Origin: Macrostomum lignano
Taxonomy: Eukaryota
Assembly: GCA_002269645.1 (NCBI GenBank)
Contig: NIVC01003866.1
Span: 9,052-73,051, forward strand
Reading direction: 5' to 3'
Length of the DNA: 64,000 bases
The translations under genes were made by a program, and so were the position numbers. The notes under the pieces were generated by a model. The model had not been told where the DNA came from. It was given only the letters and a program-made list of their open reading frames with translations, and did not search any database. Positions 1-54,389 of the stretch are shown here, one piece after another (the stretch's first letter is position 1; each line of letters begins with the position of its first letter).

Positions 1-2862
1 CTGTATTCGAGCAGGCCTTGCAGCTGAGGCAGGAGTTTACAAAGTTCTCGACGGAGGCCCGCATTGAGGGCCACCAGACCTTTGTCTGGAGGCGTGTCAA
101 TGTTTTCTGGACACCCAGGTGGCCTTGGTGCGCCAGCTGCAGGCAGCGGTAGCGCAGAAAGGCGGGAACGACGATTCGGTGCCCTTTGAGCAGGAGTCCG
201 TCGTGTTGTGAAAGCTCGTGCCGCAAGCCGTGCAGGCTGCGCGTGTCGTGGCTATCGAGTTGCCACCGATGGGACTGGAGCCTGGATACGGCGGCTTGGA
301 TCGTCTTGTCGCCTGCGGCGGCAACCTCCTTGATCGTGTCGAGGCTGATGCTGTTCGGCGCTGCTGCCTGTGCTGTCAATGCGATGTAGGCCGTGTCGAT
401 GTCCTCGCCCTCGTTGTTCGGCGGTGTTGGACGTGGCTGGCGGCTCAAGACATCTGCCGGGTTGTCTGCGCCCGGCTGGTAGGTGACTTCGAAGTGGAGA
501 TCCTGCAGCCGAAGTGCCATGCGCTCAATCCGCGGCGGGGGCCGTGAGCCGGGGCTGAGCAGGCTGACCAGCGGATTGTGGTCGTTGATGACCTTGAAAT
601 TTGGGCAGACGCTAAGGTAGTGGTGGAACTTGCAGCCGAATTTGACGACCAGCGCCTCCCTCTCTGTCTGCGAGTAGCGCTGCTCGGTGTCACTGAGGCT
701 GCGGCTGGCGTAGGCGATTGGCCTGGTGAGGCCGCCAGGTTGCACCTGGGCGAGGATCGCCCCGAGGCCGGTCGGACTAGCGACGACGATCAACCTGGTC
801 TCGCAGTTCTTGCTGAAAAAGGCAAGCGTGGTGCTGTGAGCGATCGACTGCTTGATTGACTGAAAGGCTGAGGCTTGCTGTGGACCCCACGACCATTTCA
901 CGTTCTTCTTGGTCAGCTCTCGAAGTGGCCTCGCTTTGTCGGCGAGGTTTGGGATGAAGCGGGCTACGAATGTGATGAGCCCGAGAAAGGACCGCACCTC
1001 CGTTGCATTTTCTGGTCGCTTGAAGTTGGCCACAGCCTCCAGATTTTCCTCAGTCGGTTGGATTCCGGCCGCCGAGAGGCGCATGGCCAGTCGGCCTGCT
1101 GGGTTGCAATGCAGCATTTGCGGGGGTTCAGAGTCACGTTGTGTTGACGCAGCCTGTCAAGGCAGTTGCGCAGCCTCTCGTTGTGCTCCTTTATGGTGCT
1201 GGCGAAGATAATGATGTCGTCGTGGACCCACCGCACGCCTCTTAAACCGCTCAGGATAGATGTCATGACGCGCTGTAGGATTTCGGATGCTGAGGTAAAT
1301 CCCATGCAAAGGCTCTTGAGGCGGAGCAGACCCAGAGGCGTTGAGAAAGTGAGCAGCTGCCAGGACTCCTTGCTGACCTCGATCTGGTGGAAGGCCTTGG
1401 CAACGTCTAGTTCGGAGAAATAGGTGGAGCCGGCCATCTCGTCGGTGACTTCTTCGAATGTCGGTATTAGCTGTTTTTCTGGGATGACGTACTTATTCAC
1501 GTCCCTCAGGTCCTGCGTGATGCGGATCTCGCCTGGCGAGGCCTTTGGAACGACCACCATGCGTGAACTCCAAGCGCTGGGCCCCGTCACTCGCTCCAGG
1601 ATGCCGGCTGCTAGCTGGTCCTTCAGCTCCTTTTCCACGGTGGTTCGAAGATGCACCGGAACTCGAGACGGAGGGTGGCAGACAGGCACTGCTTCTTCCT
1701 TCAGCTGGATGCTGACTGAGACGCCCTTGATGCAGCCGATTCCTTGAAACCTGTCGCTGAACTCCTTCATGATCGATGACAGTCGCAGGTCTTGCGGAAG
1801 GTGCTGGTCGTTGACTGTTAGTGTCAGTCCGGCGGTGAGAGCTGTCTCGGCCTGCGGTCCGACCCTCAGCATCCCAATCTGCGTGCTTGTTTCGCGACCT
1901 AGAATTGTGATGCAGTCTTCTCTGATGACGATGAAGCGCACTCTCTCCGAGTTGCCGTTGATCTTCGTGTGCAGAGTGATCTGGCCGGCGGGTGTCAGGG
2001 GCCTCGCTGCTCCTAGAGGATAGACCCTTGTGTGCGTGGGCTGAAGCGCCCTCTGGGGTGCTCCCGTTAGACGAAGGGTCCGCTGGCTGAGCACGTTGCA
2101 GCTCGCGCCACTGTCGATCAGGACGGGTACGTTCGAGCCGTTGATGACCGCTTTGAAGGTGCCGCTTTTGCGGCTGGGGTCGAGGCTGGAGAATACCGCC
2201 TCCGCCAGGTGCGCCACTGCTGGTTCCTCTGGCTCAGGCTCTGCCATGTTGATGCGTGCGCGGCCGCTTAGGCACGCCTTCGCCAGGTGGTGCAGCTTTC
2301 CGCAGTTGCTGCAGCGCTTGCCTTGGGCCCAGTTGCATGTGCAGTGGCCGGGCTCTCCACACCTCAGGCATTTGTCGGCCGGGCTGGCTGGCGGGCACCT
2401 GGCGGGGTGCTTGTCGCAAGCCGCATGCACTTCTTCAGCTGGTCCGGCTGCCGAGCGCTCCATGATTGCCGCTTGCTGGCTGGCTGCTTCGTTTGTTCTT
2501 GCCAGCTGTAGGGCCTCGGGGAGGCTGATGTTGGGCCCGTTGAGCAGCCGCTTTCTGAGGGATTCGCTGCGGCAGCAGGCGACGATCTGGTCGCGGATGA
2601 GGGACTAACACAGCTCGCAAAACTGGCAGGCCTCAGCCGCGTTGCACAGTCGGTTGTACCAGCTGTCGATGGCTTCCTCGTCCAGCTGCGTGCACTGGCG
2701 GAATTGGTACCGGATGAACACCACATTGTCGCGTCCTTGAAAGTGCTGAGTTAGCGCCGCCATGAGTGAGTCGAGCGCGTTTGCTGCTCCGGCTGTGACG
2801 GTGTGGGGGTCCGCACTGATGCTGAATGCGGATGGCGGCTGTAGCTGTATAGTAGCGCCATT
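1..2862 (-). pseudogene. Disrupted gag-pol polyprotein
   Basis: In-frame TAG in gag at 2605-2607; frameshift after QQADW near 1085 (the other frame continues MRLSAAGIQPTEENLEAVANFKRP); another frameshift near 180 (KG to RIVVPAF); RNase H DAS motif reads VAS. Largest open piece is ORF 964-2463. Confidence 0.88.
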
Positions 2863-6719: not shown

Positions 6720-27022
<20,303 letters not shown>

Positions 27023-27718: not shown

Positions 27719-34369
<6,651 letters not shown>

Positions 34370-36624: not shown

Positions 36625-37920
36625 TTCACCAACCCCAAAACACCAACCCAAAACACCCACCCAAAACACCCACCCCAAAATACTCACCCCAAAACACTCA
36701 CACCAAAACTCTCACCCCAAAGCACTCACCCCAAAACTCTCACCCCAAAGCACTCACCCCAAAACTCTCACCCCAAAGCACTCACCCCAAAACACTCACC
36801 CTAAAACACTCACCCCAAAACTCTCACCCCAAAGCACTCACCCTAAAACACTCACCCCAAAACTCTCACCCCAAAGCACTCACCCCAAAGCACTCACCCC
36901 AAAACACTCACCCTAAAACACACCCTAAAACACTCACCCCAAAACTCTCACCCCAAAACTCTCACCCCAAAGCACTCACCCCAAAACACTCACCCTAAAA
37001 TACTCACCCTAAAACACTCACCCCAAAACTCTTACCCCAAAGCACTCACCCCAAAACACTCACCCCAAAACACCCACCCCAAAACACCCATCCCAAAACA
37101 CTCACCCCAAAATACTCACCCCAAAACACCCACCCTAAAACTCTCACCCCAAAACACCCATCCCAAAAGACCCACCCCAAAACACCCACCCCAAAACACC
37201 CACCCAAAACACCCATCCCAAAACATCCCAAATACCCAAAACACCAACCCCAAAACACCCACCCCAAAACACCCACCCCAAAACACCCACCCCAAAACAC
37301 CCACCCAAAACACCCACCCCAAAACACCCATCCCAAAACACCAACCCAAAACACCAACACCCCCCAAAACACCCACCCCAAAACACCCACCCCAAAACAC
37401 CCACCCCAAAACACCAACCCCAAAACACTCACCCCAAAACACCCACCCCAAAACACCCATCCCAAAACACTCACCCCAAAATACTCACCCCAAAACACCC
37501 ACCCTAAAACTCTCACCCCAAAACACCCATCCCAAAAGACCCACCCCAAAACACCCACCCCAAAACACCCACCCCAAAACACCCATCCCAAAACACCCAT
37601 CCCAAATACCCACCCCAAAACACCAACCCCAAAACACCCACCCCAAAACACCCACCCCAAAACACCCACCCCAAAACACCCACCCCAAAACACCCACCCC
37701 AAAACACCCACCCCAAAACACCAACCCCAAAACACCAACCCCAAAACACCCACCCCAAAACACCCACCCCAAAACACCCACCCCAAAACACCAACCCCAA
37801 AACACCAACCCCAAAACACCCACCCCAAAACACCAACCCCAAAACACCAACCCCAAAACACCCACCCCAAAACACTCACCCGAAAACTCTTACCCAAAAA
37901 TACCCACCCCAAAACACCAC
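36625..37920. repeat. 13-bp C/A-rich minisatellite
   Basis: Unit caccccaaaacac, about 1.3 kb. Confidence 0.96.
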
Positions 37921-38329: not shown

Positions 38330-41300
38330 TGTACCTGTCTATCCATCTACCTGCACACCCACTCACCTGTCTATCCATCTACCTGCACACCCACTCACCT
38401 GTCCATCCATCTACCTGCACACCCACTCACCTGTCCATCCATCTACCTGCACACCCACTCACCTGTCTATCCATCTACCTGCACACCCACTCACCTGTCT
38501 ATCCATCTACCTGCACACCCACTCACCTGTCTATCCATCTACCTGCACACCCATTCACCTGTCTATCCATCTACCTGCACACCCATTCACCTGTCCATCC
38601 ATCTACCTGCACACCCAGCCACCTGTCTATCCATCTACCTGCACACCCATTCACCTGTCTATCCATCTACCTGCACACCCATTCACCTGTCCATCCATCT
38701 ACCTGCACACCCATTCACCTGTCCATCCATCTACCTGCACACCCACTCACCTGTCCATCCATCTACCTGCACACCCACTCACCTGTCCATCCATCTACCT
38801 GCACACCCACTCACCTGTCCATCCATCTACCTGCACACCCACTCACCTGTCCATCCATCTACCTGCACACCCATTCACCTGTCCATCCATCTACCTGCAC
38901 ACCCACTCACCTGTCCATCCATCTACCTGCACACCCATTCACCTGTCCATCCATCTACCTGCACACCCAGCCACCTGTCTATCCATCTACCTGCACACCC
39001 ATTCACCTGTCTATCCATCTAACTGCACACCCATTCACCTGTCTATCCATCTACCTGCACACCCATTCACCTGTCTATCCATCTACCTGCACACCCACTC
39101 ACCTGTCTATCCATCTACCTGCACACCCAGCCACCTGTCTATCCATCTACCTGCACACCCACTCACCTGTCTATCCATCTACCTGCACACCCATTCACCT
39201 GTCTATCCATCTAACTGCACACCCACTCACCTGTCTATCCATCTACCTGCACACCCATTCACCTGTCTATCCATCTACCTGCACACCCATTCACCTGTCT
39301 ATCCATCTACCTGCACACCCATTCACCTGTCTATCCATCTACCTGAACACTCAGCCACCTGTCTATCCATCTACCTGCACACCCAGCCACCTGTCTATCC
39401 ATCTACCTGCACACCTATTCACCTGTCTATCCATCTAACTGCACACCCATTCACCTGTCTATCCATCTACCTGCACACCCACTCACCTGTCTATCCATCT
39501 ACCTGCACACCCAGCCACCTGTCTATCCATCTACCTGCACACCCACTCACCTGTCTATCCATCTACCTGCACACCCATTCACCTGTCTATCCATCTAACT
39601 GCACACCCACTCACCTGTCTATCCATCTACCTGCACACCCATTCACCTGTCTATCCATCTACCTGCACACCACCCACTCACCTGTCTATCCATCTACCTG
39701 CACACCCATTCACCTGTCTATCCATCTACCTGCACACCCACTCACCTGTCTATCCATCTACCTGCACACCCACTCACCTGTCTATCCATCTAACTGCACA
39801 CCCACTCACCTGTCTATCCATCTACCTGCACACCCACTCACCTGTCTATCCATCTACCTGCACACCCATTCACCTGTCTATCCATCTACCTGCACACCCA
39901 CTCACCTGTCTATCCATCTACCTGCACACCCACTCACCTGTCTATCCATCTACCTGCACACCCATTCACCTGTCTATCCATCTAACTGCACACCCACTCA
40001 CCTGTCTATCCATCTACCTGCACACCCATTCACCTGTCTATCCATCTACCTGCACACCCATTCACCTGTCTATCTATCTACCTGAACACTCAGCCACCTG
40101 TCTATCCACCCACCTGAACACTCAGCCACCTGTCTATCCATCTACCTGCACACCCATTCACCTGTCTATCCATCTACCTGCACACCCACTCACCTGTCTA
40201 TCCATCTACCTGCACACCCACTCACCTGTCTATCCATCTAACTGCACACCCACTCACCTGTCTATCCATCTACCTGAACACTCAGCCACCTGTCTATCCA
40301 CCCACCTGAACACTCAGCCACCTGTCTATCCATCTACCTGCACACCCATTCACCTGTCTATCCATCTACCTGAACACTCAGCCACCTGTCTATCCACCCA
40401 CCTGAACACTCAGCCACCTGTCTATCCATCTACCTGCACACCCATTCACCTGTCTATCCATCTACCTGCACACCCACTCACCTGTCTATCCATCTACCTG
40501 CACACCCATTCACCTGTCTATCCATCTACCTGCACACCCATTCACCTGTCTATCCATCTACCTGCACACCCATTCACCTGTCTATCCATCTACCTGCACA
40601 CCCATTCACCTGTCTATCCATCTACCTGCACACCCACTCACCTGTCTATCCATCTACCTGCACACCCATTCACCTGTCTATCCATCTACCTGAACACTCA
40701 GCCACCTGTCTATCCACCCACCTGAACACTCAGCCACCTGTCTATCCATCTACCTGCACACCCATTCACCTGTCTATCCATCTACCTGCACACCCACTCA
40801 CCTGTCTATCCATCTACCTGCACACCCACTCACCTGTCTATCCATCTACCTGCACACCCATTCACCTGTCTATCCATCTACCTGCACACCCATTCACCTG
40901 TCTATCCATCTACCTGCACACCCATTCACCTGTCTATCCATCTACCTGCACACCCATTCACCTGTCTATCCATCTAACTGCACACCCATTCACCTGTCTA
41001 TCCATCTACCTGCACACCCATTCACCTGTCTATCCATCTACCTGCACACCCACTCACCTGTCTATCCATCTACCTGCACACCCACTCACCTGTCTATCCA
41101 TCTAACTGCACACCCACTCACCTGTCTATCCATCTACCTGCACACCCATTCACCTGTCTATCCATCTACCTGCACACCCATTCACCTGTCTATCCATCTA
41201 CCTGCACACCCACTCACCTGTCTATCCATCTACCTGCACACCCACTCACCTGTCTATCCATCTACCTGCACACCCACTCACCTGTCTATCCATCTACCTG

Positions 41301-41828
41301 CACACCCATTCACCTGTCTATCCACCCACCTGCACACCCAGCCACCTGTCCATCCACCCACCTGCACACTCAGCCACCTGTCCATCCACCCACTTGCACA
41401 CTCAGCCACCTGTCCACCCACCCACCTGCACACCCACTTACCTGTCCATCCACCCACCTGCACACCCAGCCACCTGTCCATCCACCCACCTGCACACTCA
41501 GCCACCTGTCCACCCACCCACCTGCACACCCACTTACCTGTCCATCCACCCACCTGCACACCCAGCCACCTGTCCATCCACCCACCTGCACACTCAGCCA
41601 CCTGTCCACCCACCCACCTGCACACCCACTTACCTGTCCATCCACCCACCTGCACACTCAGCCACCTGTCCATCCACCCACCTGAACACTCAGCCACCTG
41701 TCCGTCCACCCACCTGCACACCCAGCCACCTGTCCGTCCACCCACCTGCACACTCAGCCACCTGTCCATCCACTCACCTGCACACCCACTCACCTGTCTA
41801 TCCACCCACCTGCACACCCAGCCACCTG
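38330..41828. repeat. 32-bp satellite (two related 16-mers), about 3.5 kb, with a short resumption at 42858-42950
   Basis: Unit acctgcacacccactc-acctgtctatccatct. Confidence 0.97.
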
Positions 41829-43222
41829 CTCAGCCCATCAATGTACAAGTGCTGGTGCACTTTCAAACCAGCGGTGACCTCGCACACCAGCCTTGGAGCT
41901 GACGGCATCGCTGAAATTCCAACTGACTTTATTTTGCATTTTTGGCCGGCAGCGGCGCTGCCATAAATTTGGAGCTAAAATTAGAAAATTATGCGAAGCC
42001 GCTTTTTATTTGACCAAAAAAGTCGGCAATTCTGGGAAACTTTCGAGAGAAAAAAGATAAAATTTGCGGACAGTTTTTGAATTGAAGCAGTTTTTACTGA
42101 GCAGCCAACTCAACTGTGCCCGGCACGGACTCGGAGCTTCCCCGGGCCCGAAATTCAAAAGGCCTGCCCTGCGCCTTTGTAAAATCAATAAGGCGCTCAA
42201 AGAGTTTGAACCCCGAGTCCAAGGGTTGAATTTGATGAAGCAAAAGATAATGGGTGGAATTGCTGGTTTTGTTCCTAATTCTGCGGGATGAGGCAAATAT
42301 TTGCTGAGCTCTCGGCGCATTGTTCTCCTCAGCTTCTTTTTCTGTCCGAGTTGCTTGGGGGGGGGGTGTTGCTTCAAGCGGGCTCTTCATCATCCAGCAA
42401 ATATTGGCAACTGAAAGAGCGAGTGGCTTTACAGCCTGAATCGCTCTCTCAATTGCGCTTGGCTCCGCGCCGTTACTTTTTTTGAGCAATGGGTAGCGAT
42501 GACGCTGGGAGGCTGGGCTGCCAAAGTCATTGTCTGTGTTGTCAAGCCCCAAAGCGCGAACGCAGACCTGCAGCAGCGCCCGTGTTTTCGCACAGTTGTG
42601 TCTGTCTGCTTTTTTGAGAACCGCCATCTGCATCTCAATGAGGGCGAGCGTTCGCAGTGAAACTCGGGGCGCGAGTTTCCTGCTCTGCGCATGCGGGATC
42701 ACGATTTCTCGGTCACTTTCGATCGATCGGCAGCTGGCCCGGTGCGACTCTGCATTGTGCCGAGGGCCTCATCTCTTCAGATCACTGGGAGACCGACTTT
42801 TCCCCGGTTCTTGCATTGCACTTTTCGGGCACTTTAATCCCTGACCAGGTGTTTTAATTGTCTATCCATCCGCCTGCACACCCACTCACCTGTCTATCCA
42901 CCCGCCTGCACACCTACTCGCCTGTCTATCCATCCACCTGCTCACCCACCAACCTATTACTAATTAGGAGGATCAATTCAATACTCGAGTTGTTTCAGTG
43001 CCAAGTTTAGCTTATAAAAAAACAAAAACTGCAAGAGTCTGAAGCAGCAATTTATCTGTGTGCAAATTCGACTAATGCGAAACTCGCCGAGACGGCAATG
43101 CGTGGCCGTGGATCGCGGGAGCAATCTTAGATTTTAATTAGTACATAATAACTTGCACAAATATTTTGAGTCTGCCAATGATCTCAGCCAGGACTGACAT
43201 GGCCGGTTCGTCCCGAGGAAAT

Positions 43223-44186
43223 TCACTGCCGGGGCACCGGCACGCAGGTGGACTTGCACTCCCCTACCGCGCACATGTAGCTGGGGCTGCGGTACTGCGC
43301 CATGCAGTCCACGTGGTTGAAGCACTGCACCTCGAAGGCCTCGCAGCCGCCGCCTGAGTTGTAGAGAAACCGCTTGGCCCGCGGGCCCGCCAGCTCGCCG
43401 AGGCCTGTGGGAGGGAGTTGCTTTGGCTTTGATTAATCTGTTTTAAAGTTGGTTGCTAGTCTAGCCAAAACGTGAATTAATAATGAAGATTCTACTTAAT
43501 TCCATCCGAGTTCAGCTCAAAGCTTCAGTCCGTACGACTTGGATCTGTCTATCTGGTTCGAACCCCGTCCCAGCCCGAGTTCGAACCCCAAGCCTGAGTT
43601 CGAACCCCCAGCCCGAGTTCGAAACCCCCCAGCCCGAGTTCGAACCCCCAGCGCGAGTTAGAACCCACCAGCCCGAGTTCGAACCCCCAGCGCGAGTTAG
43701 AACCCACCAGCCCGAGTTCGAACCCCCAGCGCGAGTTAGAACCCACCAGCCCGAGTTCGAAACCCCCCAGCCCGAGTTCGAACCCCCAGCGCGAGTTAGA
43801 ACCCACCAGCCCGAGTTCGAACCCCCAGCGCGAGTTAGAACCCACCAGCCCGAGTTCGAACCCCCAGCGCGAGTTAGAACCCACCAGCCCGAGTTCAAAC
43901 CCCCAGCGCGAGTTCGAACCCCCCCCAACCCGAGTTCGAACCCCCTCCCAGCCCGAGTTCGAACCCCCCAGCCCGAGTTCGAACCCCCCCAGCCCGAGAT
44001 CGAACCCCCAGCCCGAGTTCGAACCCCCCCCCCCAGCCCGAGTTCGAACCCCCAGCCCGAGTTCCAACCCCCCCAGCCCGAGATCGAACCCGCGGATCTC
44101 GCGACGCGAACGGCGCTGGCCGCGCCTTCCTGCTGAGCTGCCAGCAGCAGGACCAGTAGGGCGATGATGGCGTGCAGAGGCTGCAT
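43223..44186 (-). CDS. Small secreted six-cysteine peptide precursor, 2 exons, 92 aa
   Basis: Exon 1 44186-44090, exon 2 43404-43223, phase 1 GT-AG intron (acceptor ctccctcccacag). Product MQPLHAIIALLVLLLAAQQEGAASAVRVARSAGLGELAGPRAKR-FLYNSGGGCEAFEVQCFNHVDCMAQYRSPSYMCAVGECKSTCVPVPRQ: hydrophobic signal, KR site, six Cys. ATTAAA about 85 nt after the stop. Donor (G|GTTCGA) is weak. Confidence 0.75.
43555..44090. repeat. 18-19-bp minisatellite filling the peptide gene intron
   Basis: Unit gttcgaacccccagcccga with higher-order variants. Confidence 0.93.
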
Positions 44187-44956
44187 TGCGCTCGTTTGCT
44201 TCTTCTGTTGTTGGCTTTAGTGATGTTGCAGATTCTGCGGAGGTCAGAGGTCAGAATGTAGGGTTGGCGGCAACTCGTGGGATCGAGGCGGAGTCTTCCC
44301 AGCAACCGCCAAAAGGCCACAGAGAGTGCTCGTAGAGTTTCCCCAATATTTCCCCAAACCAAGACCAGCTTTAAAGACTTTGGCTCCCAATCGGCCCCAA
44401 TTTGAATATTTCAGGAGCCACGCCGCTGGCCCACAAAAATCCCAGTCTGAATTTTTCATGAACTCTGCGGAGCTGCAGACCAACTAGTTGTCCCCAGTGG
44501 GAATTCAGGGGATAACTAACTAACGCTGTCCATTTCAAACGCAAACTCTGCAAAGTGCTCGCCCAGGCAATCATCGTCTTACCGAAGTGTCGCCGTTGCC
44601 AGGTGGTGCCGAGGTATCCGAGAGAGACTTGCAGGAAGCGAATTCGAGCTGGGAATGGCCGCTGTCGCTTTTAACTTGCTGTCAGGAGCCGGCGGGGTGG
44701 CTGACTGGGGGGGGGGAGGGGGGCAGCCCAGGCCAATGGTGGAGCGGGTACTGCCAACTTTTTCTATTGGATTTTTTGGTATTGATCAATATGCAAGTCA
44801 AGGTGTGAGATTAATGCCATGCAGTCCGAGAGTGAGATTCGAACTCCCGATAGGTCCAGACAGTGTTCTGAGTGAGATCTCAGAGTCAGGCTGAGCAAGG
44901 GGCAAGGGCATCATCCAGTGCTCACACACTCTAGAAGTTCTGTTTAACTATAAAAC

Positions 44957-45240
44957 CATTGCATAGCCTAGTGGTTAAGAGCATCAGACTCACGACTTGA
45001 AGGTTCAGGGGTTCGATTCCCGATCCCCACTGGAACAATTTGTGTCCTTGAGCAAAACACTATACTTAACTCTGCATTGCTTCAGTTCACCCAGCTGTAA
45101 ATTGGTTACCAGCATTAGCTGAGGTAGCTGAGGGTGTGGTGACCCGCCATGCAGTCCTTGGACTGAACAGCCGTACGCAGCCTTCAGATGCATCAAGTGG
45201 GCCCAGTTGGGCAGGTGTAATCAATTATAATAATAATTAT
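44957..45240 (+). mobile_element. tRNA-derived SINE with CORE-like central domain
   Basis: A box tagcctagtgg (44964-44974), B box ggttcgattcc (45010-45020), then tgtgtccttgagcaaaacac...ttaactctgcattgcttcagttcacccagctgtaaattgg (45041-45105) aligning by eye to the MIR core, and an (ATA)n tail. Confidence 0.8.
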
Positions 45241-49300: not shown

Positions 49301-50471
49301 TCACAGCCGGTTGCCAGGAGCCTGCCTGCCCTGCTGCTGCTGGCTGTACTGTGTCAGCACCTGCTGTAGCGCCTGTACAGACAGCTCGTGCACCGTCTGC
49401 GGCCGGCACTGCTCCTCCAGCCAGGTGATTACGCAGCCGGACAGCTCGGCGAAGCTGCCAGCCGACGTGGACCGGTCGAAGCCGGCGAACAGCTGGTCCA
49501 TCACGGACTGGAACACGCTGAACTTCACCTGCTCCGGCAGCGGCTGCGACTGCGGCGAGGAGGCGGCCGCAGCCCCGCCAGATGCTCCGGCACTGCTCAC
49601 AAAGTGCTCATAGTTCATCTTCATTATCTTCAGCGCCATCACCTGCAGTTGGTAGACAGGTTTACTTATTAGCTATGATTTATGAGCAACTTGTAATGTA
49701 TATCACTAGGTAGAATCCCTAGATCAAGGCTGGAATGGCACTCATCAAGGCTGGAATGGCACTCATCAGTACTAGAATTGCACTTATCAAGGCTGGAATG
49801 GCACTCATCAATACAAGAATGGCACTCATCAAGGCTGGAATGGCACTCATCAAGTCTGGAATGGCACTCATCAATACTAGAATGGTACTCATCAATACTA
49901 GAATGGCACTCATCAATACTAGAATGGCACTCATCAATACTAGAATGGCACTCATCAATACTAGAATGGCACTCATCAAAGCTAGTATAATACCCTCTTG
50001 GCACCCTCGCACCTCTTTGTGCAGTTTGTCCAGCTCGCGCTCCTGCAACTCCTTCTGCTTGGCCAGATGCTCCATGTGCCTGATTGACCTCTGCAAGATG
50101 GACGCTTTGCTCAGCGACTTGGCGTTAGTTTCTCCAGACCCGCCACCAGCAGCGGCAGCGCCGCCGGCAGCCGAGGCGCTGGGCGCGGCGCCAACCAGCT
50201 CGTACAGCTTGTCATAGCCCTGCTTGATGGCGTCCCTGCGCTTCTGCTCGGCCTGCGTGTGCAGCTCGCGCCTCCGGTCCTTCACCAGCGCGGCTGAATC
50301 ATGCGAGAAGTCGCCACCACCACCGGCGCCGCCGCTGTTGCTGCTGTCCAGCAGCATGTCCTCCCGGTCGGAGAGGCTCGGGGACCGATGGCCGCTGCGG
50401 CCGCCGCCAGCACTGCCGCCGGAGGCCTGCAGAGCGCGGGATCTGCTGCTGTGCTGACCGCTGACCTGGCG
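49301..50471 (-). CDS. MLX: Max-like protein X (MLX/bigmax) bHLH-ZIP transcription factor, 5' end uncertain
   Basis: Exons about 50471-50013 and 49642-49301 (phase 0 at KE|VMAL). HTQAEQKRRDAIKQGY, LSKASILQRSI, ALKIMKMNYE, QVKFSVFQSVMDQLF, SFAELSGCVITWLEEQCRPQT match MLX bHLH-ZIP plus the C-terminal DCD. Start is either an upstream exon or the in-frame ATG at 50359. Confidence 0.92.
49725..49982. repeat. 21-bp minisatellite, MLX intron
   Basis: Unit ggcactcatcaatactagaat. Confidence 0.93.
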
Positions 50472-53400
50472 CTGCAGCAAGTTGTTAAAGCAGCTAATTT
50501 TCTTGCTCTGCATGCTACTTACTTTCAGTAGGCAGCTCACAGTTCGCTCATCTTAATTTTATTGTTCCTATTTTTTATTTCAAATAAAGTAAAAACAGCT
50601 TGGCTTCTGTGAAAAAAGCATCAAAAAGTTAAAAGCCTGACTATTGTTGTCAACTTACATTACTTTAAGAATCTCAACCAAAATATAAGTTTGATGAATC
50701 TTAATATTTGCTAACAATTAATTCTACATTTTGCAATGTTTTATTTCAAATTAAAATTTTAACTACTTTTTAAAAATATTAACAAATTATTGAAATTGTT
50801 ACGAATGAAAAAATAAAATCTTAGAATTATTAATAGCAATAATAAACAATCTTTTATTTTAAATTTTATAAGCATGTATCTAACAACAAGTGATATATGC
50901 TAATAAAAAAACTAAGTTTATTTGCCACAAAGCTTGCCTCTTGTCTTATACTAAGCAAAGTAGGCATTGCAAAATCTTTTTGCATATATGTTAATTATTG
51001 GTTTAGCCTTGTGGTAGAAACTCTAGATGCAAAATATCTTTTGCATCAAAGAAACATAGCATAAGCTTCATTTTTTACTTTGATTACTAAAAATACTATT
51101 TCTTCATAGGTTTTTATGATCCTGTCTGCCTCTATTCAAGATTCTGGCACTTAAGTTCAAAATAAGTTATTTGCCTAGTCTAGCTCACTAAGATTTTTTA
51201 ATTCCAAAAACTCATAGAGGGGTTGATAGTCATTTTGTCTGCTTCCAGTTTGTGTACCCCTCTTGTCTGCCAAAATACAATATAGTTAATAGAGGTAGCA
51301 GAAAAATGATTACATACCCAAGGAGGTACTCAAAAGAATTAATTTCTTATTTAAACACTAAATAAGAGAGCCATAAACATTGGACTTTAGACTTTAGATA
51401 GCTAAAGCAAGGGGTCCACAAGCTTAAGGAAAGAAGCAAAGCAAAGAAACAAAGGAAAAGAGTGGCTGCTGACTGCAAGAGTGTATTTATAATTGGTAGG
51501 TAAACAAGATAATAACAAGCTTAATCCAAAAACTAGACTACCCCTTAGCTTAGGCACAATAAAATATGATTGATAAAAAACAAGTATTGTGCAGGAATAC
51601 TATAAAGTCAATACATATACATAGACAGATGGAACTACTTTACAATAAATATTTCAATATGCAAGAAATACAAATAATACTAGAATAAATACATACAAGG
51701 CTATTGATATAGTGATATAGTAATAATTGCTTATATTATGTATATTACTCATTAAATGCGTTATGAAAATTATATATCCCTTTAATAGCAAAATATTTCT
51801 GTCTATTTGATCATTAAAAGTAGCCTAAATATCGTTTTTTGTCTCAAATATGCTTATAGTGCCTCCTATTTTTAAAGTTTTGTTATGAATTGTCCGCCAT
51901 TTTTACTAAAGTTACTATAAATATGAGCAAATAAATCTGTAGAGAGCCCAGACTTCTGTGGCTGCCACTAGTAACAGGCTTTGCCTTTCGGCCGAATTGA
52001 ACAGTTGTTCTAAAAATAGACCAGTTTATGAGTTGTTCCTTTGAAGGCGCCCGCCTTTCCCCTTCCCCAAGATATAGCTGCTTTAAGAAATATAGTAATA
52101 TTTCTAACCCCCTTTTTCCTTTATCAGTTGGACAGGTGTGAGGCCTCCCTTCCCCAGATCTCTGAGTAACCTGGCGATCTGCCAACTCCTTATCTAGACA
52201 CACTGTCTGCTTAGGCGTCCTGCCCTTAGCTAATTCTCTATTAAGGCATATCTTTCCCATGTCAGCATTCCCTATTAGCTGCTAAAACCCCTTTTGTGTG
52301 CCCCGTTTCCCAGGCAACTCCGATCCATCGCGAAGCCCTTAATTCCCCTCTCCCACCTATATTCCCCGGACTGAGAATAGAAAACAGTGTCTTGCCGCTC
52401 GGACACTTCATGCCCCAGGAGCAACCCACGGCTTATTCCTGTTAGTAGTAAAATTTGAATCTTTCTTTGTTCCCCAATTAAAGTCCCTTGTGATAAATTG
52501 ATAGAATAGGAGTCAGTAATCTCACCCCACAACAGATTTTGGTGTCAGCAATAGGAAAACTTCCCTCCCCCAAGACCCCTGTAACACTATAAAAAACTAT
52601 AGATTCAACAGTTAACACTACTGCAATAATAATACATATAGAATATTGCTAAAATAAATAAAAGAATACAACTATCACCGGCGCCACCAGCATGCATACA
52701 AGATAGGGAAATACAATACTTGTACATATTCTTCTTTAAATTACACAGTCACACTTTGACTTAAAAAGTTGCAAAAGTTTATAGACTAAGCTACTTGTTT
52801 ATAGATAGAACATCTATAAGCTAGATTTGACAAAATTTTATACCAAGAATCTCAATCTCAATAATTATAAAATTATTACTATATCAAATAAAATATTATA
52901 CAATAATCATTCATGGCCTAGGCATTACGCCTAGCTAAAGAGCAAGTGAAATATACAAGACAAAGTAAAGAAAAGGAATGACAAGATAGACCTATAATAT
53001 AAAAAATGTAGCTAAATTGTGAATATATAAAACTTCTTTGGCATTTTAAACATTTAAATAAACTAATTGTATTGTAACTTTTAAGTAGGCCCTAACTAGA
53101 CAATTCCAGATTTAATTCCATTGCGCTAGAATCCCTAGAACTCTCAAGTCTATCTGTCGACTGTCTTACACGACTTACAGTGACAGACAAGTGTCATTCG
53201 AGTGCGCAAGGGTATACACTCTACTCTATGGCCGACAGACCAATAATTTTTTAATGATTTGAAATTTGAAGCATAAAAAGCAATAGGGCCGGCCTACATG
53301 TAATAGGTTGAAAGGCTGAGAAAATCAAAGCTAGCTTATCGGTTCGATTCGAAGAAAAGCAGCAGATAAAGCAGAAAAGCAATAAAAAGCAAGTAAACCT

Positions 53401-53691: not shown

Positions 53692-54389
53692 ATGACTTCA
53701 AAGGATGACGAATATGACTATCTTTTCAAAGGTACATTCTTTATTTTGAAATATGATATTATTTTTTCCCTTCCTGCAGTGGCGTACGCAGAATTTTCCA
53801 TTGAAGGGGGCGCCAACAGACCAGGGGGAGTATCGTCCATCTGCACCGACAAGTTGCAAAAATAAAGGACATTTTTGGGGTTCTCTCTGGCTAGTCGCCT
53901 CTGGCAAGACCTCCATCAGTCACCCCCTAGGTAATAGGGGGGGGGGGCTGCGTAAGCCACCGCCTTCCTAGCCTATTTGAGTCCTGAATTCTGGTTCATC
54001 CATGTCTCGGAATTAAGTTAACATTTTTTCCCTACCCATAACCCGTTATCTTTCAATTTGCACTCACCCATTTTTAATGATAATGAATTTTTGTTAGTGA
54101 ATCCATGCCACCCCAATAGATTGTGGTTTGATTTTAGTTCTAAATATGCTACAATTTCATGATGAAATGAAACTTACCTATATTTTATCTGATTTGTCTC
54201 TATTAGACACAAGACTATAAATGATCAAAAAAAGTTTTTATTTTGATTTAAACTTCTATCTATATAATTAACTAGTTTTATATTTTTCTAATTCTTAATA
54301 CAATTAACCTTAAATTCTTAACTCCGACCAAAGCAATACATATATAATCCTTTGTAATTCAAAGAATATATATTAATCTACATATTTTG

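Follow-up and report, generated by a model that had tools for sequence, protein, structure and literature searches.

A predicted convertase-processed six-cysteine peptide and its paralogues in the flatworm Macrostomum lignano

What is encoded on the minus strand at positions 43223-44186 of a 64,000-nucleotide (nt) stretch of the Macrostomum lignano genome (contig NIVC01003866.1; the whole stretch is called the window below), and what might the product do? A first-pass annotation, made from the sequence alone, had placed a hidden gene here, with two exons joined across a repeat-filled intron to give the precursor of a secreted, proteolytically processed six-cysteine peptide from a family that it did not recognise. 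Our analysis shows that the locus is a genuine transcribed M. lignano gene, Mlig025436g3, with one non-coding and two coding exons for a secretory precursor of 92 amino acids (aa). Together with Mlig004136, Mlig017203 and Mlig006190 it forms a family of four groups that, judged by sequence comparison, has so far been seen only in M. lignano. As to function, we favour a three-disulfide peptide that would be released by a convertase and would act outside the cell as a signalling ligand, and we give this statement as a whole a probability of roughly 45%.

Joining 44186..44090 (97 nt) to 43404..43223 (182 nt) on the minus strand reproduces the proposed exon join and yields a 279-nt open reading frame (ORF), from the start ATG at 44186 to a TGA stop at 43225-43223, whose translation is the 92-aa protein MQPLHAIIALLVLLLAAQQEGAASAVRVARSAGLGELAGPRAKRFLYNSGGGCEAFEVQCFNHVDCMAQYRSPSYMCAVGECKSTCVPVPRQ. 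Read from the sequence, the sole GT in exon 1 that keeps the frame is at its position 97, and the acceptor AG at 43406-43405 follows a pyrimidine-rich tract (..CTCCCTCCCACAG/GCCTCGG; here and below, a slash marks an exon border or a cleavage point). Exon 2 has no start codon, as had been stated: it contains no in-frame ATG, and its reading frame is blocked by an upstream stop. In a protein search, the 92-aa product matched GenBank PAA49477.1 (BOX15_Mlig025436g3; UniProt A0A267DLA0) with 100% identity from end to end, and the coding sequence of this entry extends over exactly 43223-44186 on contig NIVC01003866.1 of assembly GCA_002269645.1 (Mlig_3_7). The sequence of this contig matches window positions 33223-54186 identically, in reverse complement. 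The gene is hidden from a prokaryote-style ORF list, but both GenBank and UniProt have carried it since 2017 under the label of a hypothetical protein.

The Mlig_3_7 GenBank annotation is not an ab initio one. It is based on a genome-guided transcriptome (STAR, StringTie, TACO) and also uses the de novo assembly MLRNA150904, the TBONE boundary pipeline and TransDecoder ORFs (PMC5730564). Because this annotation derives from RNA sequencing transcripts and uses the 44090/43404 junction, which the first-pass annotation had singled out for confirmation, the junction is transcript-supported. Two independent older models from the ML2 assembly have it as well: P0004 (120 aa) contains the identical junction ..ARSAGLGELAGPRAKR.., and P0002 (149 aa), which reads exon 1 in a different frame, nevertheless has the same nucleotide junction, ..GATCCGCGG/GCCTCGG...

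The product has the layout that had been proposed, with a predicted signal peptide, a propeptide, a Lys-Arg (KR) site and a predicted mature peptide of 48 aa, and it is the KR with the peptide downstream of it that is conserved across the four paralogue groups. We regard this secreted, processed, disulfide-rich architecture as very probable. The top hydrophobic stretch of 11 residues, IIALLVLLLAA, has a mean Kyte-Doolittle value of 3.42; by the same heuristic, N-terminal hydrophobic cores are present in all four groups (means of 2.65-3.42 over 11 residues), in agreement with predicted signal peptides. The cysteines are at positions 9, 16, 22, 33, 38 and 42 of the mature part, so that the spacing given earlier, C-x6-C-x5-C-x10-C-x4-C-x3-C (6/5/10/4/3), is recovered. 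The furin consensus is R-X-K/R-R, and the RAKR sequence at the processing site fits it.

From the sequence and general knowledge of the secretory pathway, we infer secretion, cleavage, disulfide formation and a free N-terminus. The hydrophobic signal of approximately 25 residues would take the precursor into the endoplasmic reticulum and then be removed, and the six cysteines would pair into three disulfides. A subtilisin-like proprotein convertase of the furin or PC2 type would cut after R-A-K-R44, shedding a short, poorly conserved propeptide and freeing a 48-aa, 5.3-kDa peptide that starts with FLYNSGGGC. The stretch that would become the free N-terminus, F-L-Y-x-S-x-G-x-C, is the family's most conserved part apart from the cysteines. 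Once secreted, the peptide would act extracellularly on a receptor or channel, as a hormone, neuropeptide or paracrine ligand, and would be one of four paralogous M. lignano ligands. M. lignano has an essential PC2 homologue (RNA815_2403.2), with expression in the nervous system (PMC4490696).

To what family does the peptide belong? An exhaustive phmmer search covering 1.84 billion representative proteins gave six matches, all from M. lignano: the gene itself, frameshifted older models and three diverged paralogue groups of the kind that the first-pass annotation had suggested looking for. These groups, all annotated as hypothetical or uncharacterised, are Mlig004136 (P0005, 92 aa; E = 1.3e-7), Mlig017203 (P0007; E = 7e-5) and Mlig006190 (P0008, 117 aa; E = 1.5e-4). 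Word-indexed protein searches with the single sequence, the family profile and P0008 returned M. lignano proteins only; the word-indexed profile search is insensitive here, since it missed two known family members. A metagenome scan with family patterns produced 80 pattern matches, none of which was confirmed.

In the alignment, the four groups share the signature K-R-F-x3-S-x-G-x-C-x6-C-F-x3-D-C-x9/10-C-x4-C-x3-C, in which K, R, F, S, G, C, C, F, D, C, C, C and C are invariant. Ahead of the KR, where lengths also differ, the groups are 18-26% identical to one another, compared to 43-61% from the KR to the last cysteine; the dibasic site is thus exactly where conservation starts. Conotoxin-style families show the reverse, with a conserved signal and a hypervariable mature part. 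Each group has a single coding intron, in phase 1 and 91-103 nt past the (probable) ATG (4/4 groups). The paralogues have canonical donors (G/GTGAGG, G/GTAAGT), whereas the donor of Mlig025436g3 is weak (G/GTTCGA) and is part of a repeat described below. The family genes are dispersed, without tandem arrays.

Several models from the older assembly touch on this family. P0006 (UniProt A0A1I8FJH8, ML2) is a more divergent, frameshifted model that reads ..ELVGPAAKRF.. against ..ELAGPRAKRF.. in Mlig025436g3, and represents either an assembly error or one more copy in decay. In P0012, a 1437-aa ML2 UniProt model named 'Ion_trans', a TRPM-like channel is fused to Mlig017203 (locus L005, NIVC01000540.1), and the 177-aa P0011 ('DUF4149') fuses an upstream fragment to Mlig004136. 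Taken at face value, these two models would make the peptide a piece of a larger protein, an option that we rejected: they place a signal peptide internally, within an unrelated protein. As neither occurs in the transcript-based Mlig_3_7 annotation, they are probably merged models, or else they reflect shared transcriptional units resolved by trans-splicing.

Mlig025436g3 also has two sister copies, PAA57578.1 and PAA57582.1, on NIVC01002470.1, with V12I and one silent change. The sister introns measure 789 and 551 nt, compared to 685 nt here, with GT/AG positions unchanged; the lengths differ because the copy number of the intron minisatellite differs. An HLH gene lies 5-7 kb upstream and a FAN1-like gene downstream at the sister loci, as in the window, and this shared neighbourhood fits the recent genome duplication that M. 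lignano underwent (PMC5730564). Across the three copies, variable columns number 0 of 182 in exon 2, 8 of 164 in the unique part of the intron and 9 of 254 in the 3' flank. The invariance of exon 2 is a weak sign of constraint only, since the copies are too young (the flanks vary by 1.5-5%).

That the family was not recognised at first holds up against Pfam, the PDB and Foldseek, none of which gives a placement. In hmmscan against Pfam-A the 92-aa protein matched no family at E <= 10, and a Pfam scan of the paralogues and older models gave nothing above threshold, with weak matches only to Nodulin_late (19.7 bits, cut-off 30.4) and DUF5556 (13.6, cut-off 29). Sequence searches of the PDB with the mature peptide and the family profile returned chance matches only (E approximately 0.7 or more), among them a nitric-oxide synthase and an LDL-receptor module. 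AlphaFold2 models of the mature peptide have a predicted local distance difference test score (pLDDT) of 79 from the single sequence and 84 with a seven-sequence family alignment. Both models are fairly confident and compact and agree on their elements: a strand (13-14), a helix (19-26) and a hairpin (31-35/39-44). When both were compared with the PDB by Foldseek, nothing was found below E 0.9. The top matches were WAP domains (template modelling score, TM-score, 0.40-0.51), followed by a designed cystine-dense peptide and scorpion K+ channel toxins (E 4-9); all structural matches have E of approximately 1 or more and TM-scores of at most 0.52. A new fold is not established by this result, because Foldseek has little power on 48 residues.

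The automatic names in UniProt conflict, with 'ShKT domain-containing' for A0A267DLA0 and 'BPTI/Kunitz' for A0A1I8G0A0 and A0A1I8I8A7. As in ShKT domains, which are secreted, there are six cysteines in approximately 35-40 residues, and in cnidarian toxin or neuropeptide precursors the ShKT domain also comes after a propeptide that ends in KR. The ShKT cysteine pattern, however, ends in C-x3-C-x2-C and the fold is mainly helical, without a beta-sheet, whereas all four groups end in C-x4-C-x3-C and the AlphaFold2 model predicts a beta-hairpin. ShKT (PF01549) gave no Pfam match at E <= 10, hhalign of the family alignment against the ShK toxin gave a probability of 0.2%, and there is no ShK structure among the Foldseek matches. 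BPTI/Kunitz domains (PF00014) are likewise secreted, of approximately 50 residues and with six cysteines, but their spacing is C-x8-C-x15-C-x7-C-x12-C-x3-C, compared to 6/5/10/4/3 here. No Pfam match to this family was obtained, including for P0004 and P0002, hhalign against BPTI gave a probability of 4.7% over 19 columns, and no Kunitz structure was among the Foldseek matches. We consider the automatic names, including DUF4149 and Ion_trans for the chimeric models, to be unreliable.

The families suggested by the structural comparisons fare no better. The WAP four-disulfide core has eight cysteines and four disulfides as opposed to six cysteines here, and no Pfam WAP match was found. Cysteine-stabilised alpha/beta (CS-alpha-beta) defensins and scorpion K+ toxins resemble the peptide in the (predicted) order strand-helix-hairpin, in three disulfides and in size. 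The C-x3-C / C-x-C arrangement that defines the CS-alpha-beta fold is nevertheless missing: Cys22 is the one cysteine in the predicted helix 19-26, and a spacing of x3 separates the final two cysteines; in Foldseek, noxiustoxin and tamapin gave E 4-9 and TM-scores of 0.3-0.4.

The prokineticin/Bv8 (AVIT) peptides and the cnidarian 'toxin-like neuropeptides' share with this family a signal peptide, a compact disulfide-rich peptide and strictly conserved N-terminal residues. The analogy to prokineticins is functional only and comes from general knowledge: there is no kinship in sequence or fold, and prokineticins have ten cysteines and no propeptide. Planarian npp/spp prohormones, which are processed by PC2, share the signal, spacer, dibasic site and bioactive part. 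Most neuropeptides known from flatworms are short, linear, amidated peptides, of which one precursor often holds several copies, in contrast to the single 48-aa three-disulfide peptide here.

What, then, is the peptide likely to do? Three features suggest that the exact N-terminus matters for binding to a partner: apart from the cysteines, the residues at this end vary least in the family, conservation is higher in the mature region than in the signal and propeptide, and net charge differs from group to group. For this reason, we rank a signalling ligand above a defence peptide or toxin. A number of points weigh against a ligand released in the proposed way. The precursor has no amidation signal and contains one peptide, and is therefore not a classical small neuropeptide precursor. 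The P4 residue is basic in only two of the four paralogues, which makes the cleavage site a plain dibasic KR and not a strict furin site. The donor of the coding intron, G/GTTCGA, is weak, and 10 other in-phase donor-like copies lie inside the intron. In addition, cysteine-rich secreted peptides restricted to one lineage are very often defence or reproductive proteins and not hormones. Finally, an expression pattern, peptidomic detection or a phenotype was not found for the four genes in the text and text supplements of M. lignano papers, and the paper texts do not mention the four gene identifiers or their accessions.

It is possible, although on balance unlikely, that the peptide is instead a defence, antimicrobial or toxin-like product of gland or epithelial cells, released to mucus, gut or prey and aimed at microbes or at ion channels of other organisms. 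Such a role fits a small peptide with predicted secretion and three predicted disulfides that is found in one lineage and has several diverged paralogues, and two of the paralogues are clearly cationic (+2.9 and +5.1). The predicted strand-helix-hairpin order, with its weak Foldseek matches, recalls CS-alpha-beta defensins and scorpion K+ channel toxins, and it is one paralogue that gave the late nodulin (NCR) match (E 0.0011, with its 19.7 bits below the 30.4 cut-off). However, the peptide of Mlig025436g3 itself is acidic (net charge -1.2, pI 5.5), and a net charge that runs from -1.2 to +5.1 across the family argues against a shared cationic, membrane-active mechanism. The conservation of the mature region over the signal and propeptide is also the opposite of what fast-evolving toxin and antimicrobial peptide families show, the genes are dispersed instead of arrayed in tandem, and the structural likenesses stay at the E values and TM-scores given above. 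A role in reproduction, as a seminal-fluid or egg/shell-gland peptide that is transferred to or acts on the mate, seems improbable to us. The prostate glands of M. lignano are indeed a source of numerous small secreted proteins that are lineage-specific and have signal peptides (PMC5977470), and in the databases searched the family was found in M. lignano only; but reproductive proteins usually evolve fast in the mature part, which is the conserved part here. Diagnostic peptide strings are absent from the text supplements of the seminal-fluid screen, a weak argument given that these files may not contain sequences.

A small protease inhibitor of the Kunitz or WAP type, as the automatic BPTI/Kunitz name might suggest, is more improbable still. 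The best Foldseek matches, none of them significant, are indeed WAP structures, with half-SLPI and omwaprin among the top ones (4doq_B at E 0.9-1.1 and TM-scores of 0.40-0.48; 3ngg at E 1.2 and a TM-score of 0.51), and the 19 columns aligned by hhalign lie in the C-terminal part of BPTI. Set against this are the missing Kunitz and WAP matches in Pfam at E <= 10, the low hhalign probability, a number and spacing of cysteines unlike both families, and a propeptide removed at KR, which would be atypical. We think it least likely of all, and very unlikely indeed, that the locus is transcribed but non-functional, with a short ORF that is fortuitous or decaying. The ORF is short, the weak donor lies inside a minisatellite, and the older-assembly models P0002 and P0006 are frameshifted. 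Those frameshifts, however, sit in the error-prone ML2 assembly, which has fewer intact ORFs according to the genome paper (PMC5730564). Three intact, near-identical copies exist, with exon 2 invariant and 17 variable columns out of 418 in the neighbouring unique intron and 3' flank, and three diverged groups keep the six cysteines, the KR, the signal and the intron phase. Our ranking is a soft one: ligand, then defence or toxin, seminal fluid, protease inhibitor and non-functional locus. A bolder form of the ligand reading, which we find doubtful, would make these peptides a new flatworm-restricted, possibly macrostomid, family of three-disulfide hormones with a fold absent from the PDB, in which the FLY-x-S-N-G-x-C end would activate a receptor as in AVIT peptides.

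The gene has at least one exon beyond those of the first-pass annotation, a non-coding 5' exon that reaches to 44583 on its 3' side. P0002 and P0004 extend 5' into 44704-44583, with the exon ending ..ACACTTCG/GTAAGA; the sequence around the donor is ..GACACTTCG/GTAAGACG. After this exon, P0002 resumes at 44234 and P0004, which models a sister copy, at 44204, in each case directly past an AG. P0004 thereby uses an alternative acceptor at 44206-44205, and the intron in the 5' untranslated region (UTR) has two alternative acceptors. Coordinates of the features are collected in Table 1.

Table 1. Features of Mlig025436g3 in window coordinates
Feature	Position	Strand	Remarks
5' non-coding exon	44583..44704	-	Donor GTAAGA after 44583; 5' end at or beyond 44704
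Start-codon exon	44090..44234	-	Acceptor 44236-44235 as in P0002; coding part 44186-44090, ends in phase 1
Predicted signal peptide, residues 1-25	44112..44186	-	MQPLHAIIALLVLLLAAQQEGAASA; probable cleavage after A-S-A25
Coding-region intron	43405..44089	-	685 nt, GT..AG, phase 1, weak donor G/GTTCGA
Minisatellite	43569..44091	-	19-nt unit GGTTCGAACTCGGGCTGGG, 26 copies; occupies the intron's 5' three-quarters
Last coding exon, coding part	43223..43404	-	Rest of propeptide, KR site, 48-aa cysteine-rich peptide, TGA
Lys43-Arg44 codons, predicted convertase site	43370..43375	-	Context R-A-K-R/F; KR invariant in four groups
Predicted mature peptide, 48 aa	43226..43369	-	FLYNSGGGCEAFEVQCFNHVDCMAQYRSPSYMCAVGECKSTCVPVPRQ; calculated 5.3 kDa, pI 5.5, six cysteines
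Candidate poly(A) signal ATTAAA	43133..43138	-	Approximately 85 nt past the stop; read from sequence

The coding-region intron is filled with repeats, as described earlier, in the form of 26 copies of a 19-nt minisatellite unit. Within the window this repeat is confined to the intron array, and its first unit supplies the splice donor of Mlig025436g3. On the minus strand, the minisatellite is free of stop codons in all frames and contains 25 donor-like GGTNNNA copies, 11 of them in phase 1, including the annotated donor. Since cryptic in-phase donors are available, isoforms with longer propeptides are possible. Use of a downstream donor could add Gly/Ser/Trp-rich propeptide sequence and leave the mature peptide untouched; the annotation shows no such form. 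The minisatellite may derive from an element related to tRNAs or short interspersed nuclear elements (SINEs), because its unit contains GGTTCGAAC. tRNA-/SINE-like pieces with a B-box-like GGTTCGA(A/T)TC lie just upstream of the gene, at approximately 44820-44860 and 44960-45050; tRNA (ARAGORN) and Rfam scans of the window gave no match, including at these pieces.

The neighbours of Mlig025436g3 are a gene for a 267-aa HLH protein upstream (49301-50474, minus strand) and one for a FAN1-like nuclease downstream (33223-34369, plus strand), with an Arf/Ras-type GTPase gene at 53692-54186; the gene order is repeated at both sister loci on NIVC01002470.1. Two large tandem arrays sit between the peptide gene and the FAN1-like gene, one with 109 copies of a 32-nt unit (3.5 kb, 38333-41828) and one with 92 copies of a 14-nt unit (1.3 kb, 36627-37918), and explain why the C-rich skew is so extreme at 36-42 kb. 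At 42859-42949, just 3' of the peptide gene, there is also a short array that is related to the 32-nt unit. Elsewhere in the window there are two retrotransposon ORFs, one of 1277 aa with protease, reverse transcriptase, RNase H and integrase domains (7151-10984, plus strand) and one of 499 aa with a reverse transcriptase and a weak aspartyl-protease match (964-2463, minus strand). A 375-aa ORF at 19180-20307 (minus strand) has several Pfam matches (CBM_4_9, Big_5 and others) with no individually significant stretch, and is more reminiscent of repetitive or low-complexity sequence than of a domain.

Lineage-restricted cysteine-rich secreted peptides are numerous in every animal genome, and with its signal, propeptide, dibasic site and cysteine-rich peptide, Mlig025436g3 is in most respects an ordinary uncharacterised orphan gene of a very familiar kind. 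What is new is the recognition of a family of four groups in which conservation sets in sharply at the KR, the phase-1 intron that these groups have in common, the additional 5' exon and the failure of the ShKT and Kunitz names. M. lignano is a flatworm model with working transgenesis that is used for regeneration, stem cells, ageing and sexual conflict, and four uncharacterised, putatively secreted peptides are a cheap and tractable target in this animal. Should they be ligands, the peptide repertoire of flatworms, mostly short and linear, would gain a cysteine-rich class; if they are defence peptides or toxins, they would provide a new small disulfide scaffold.

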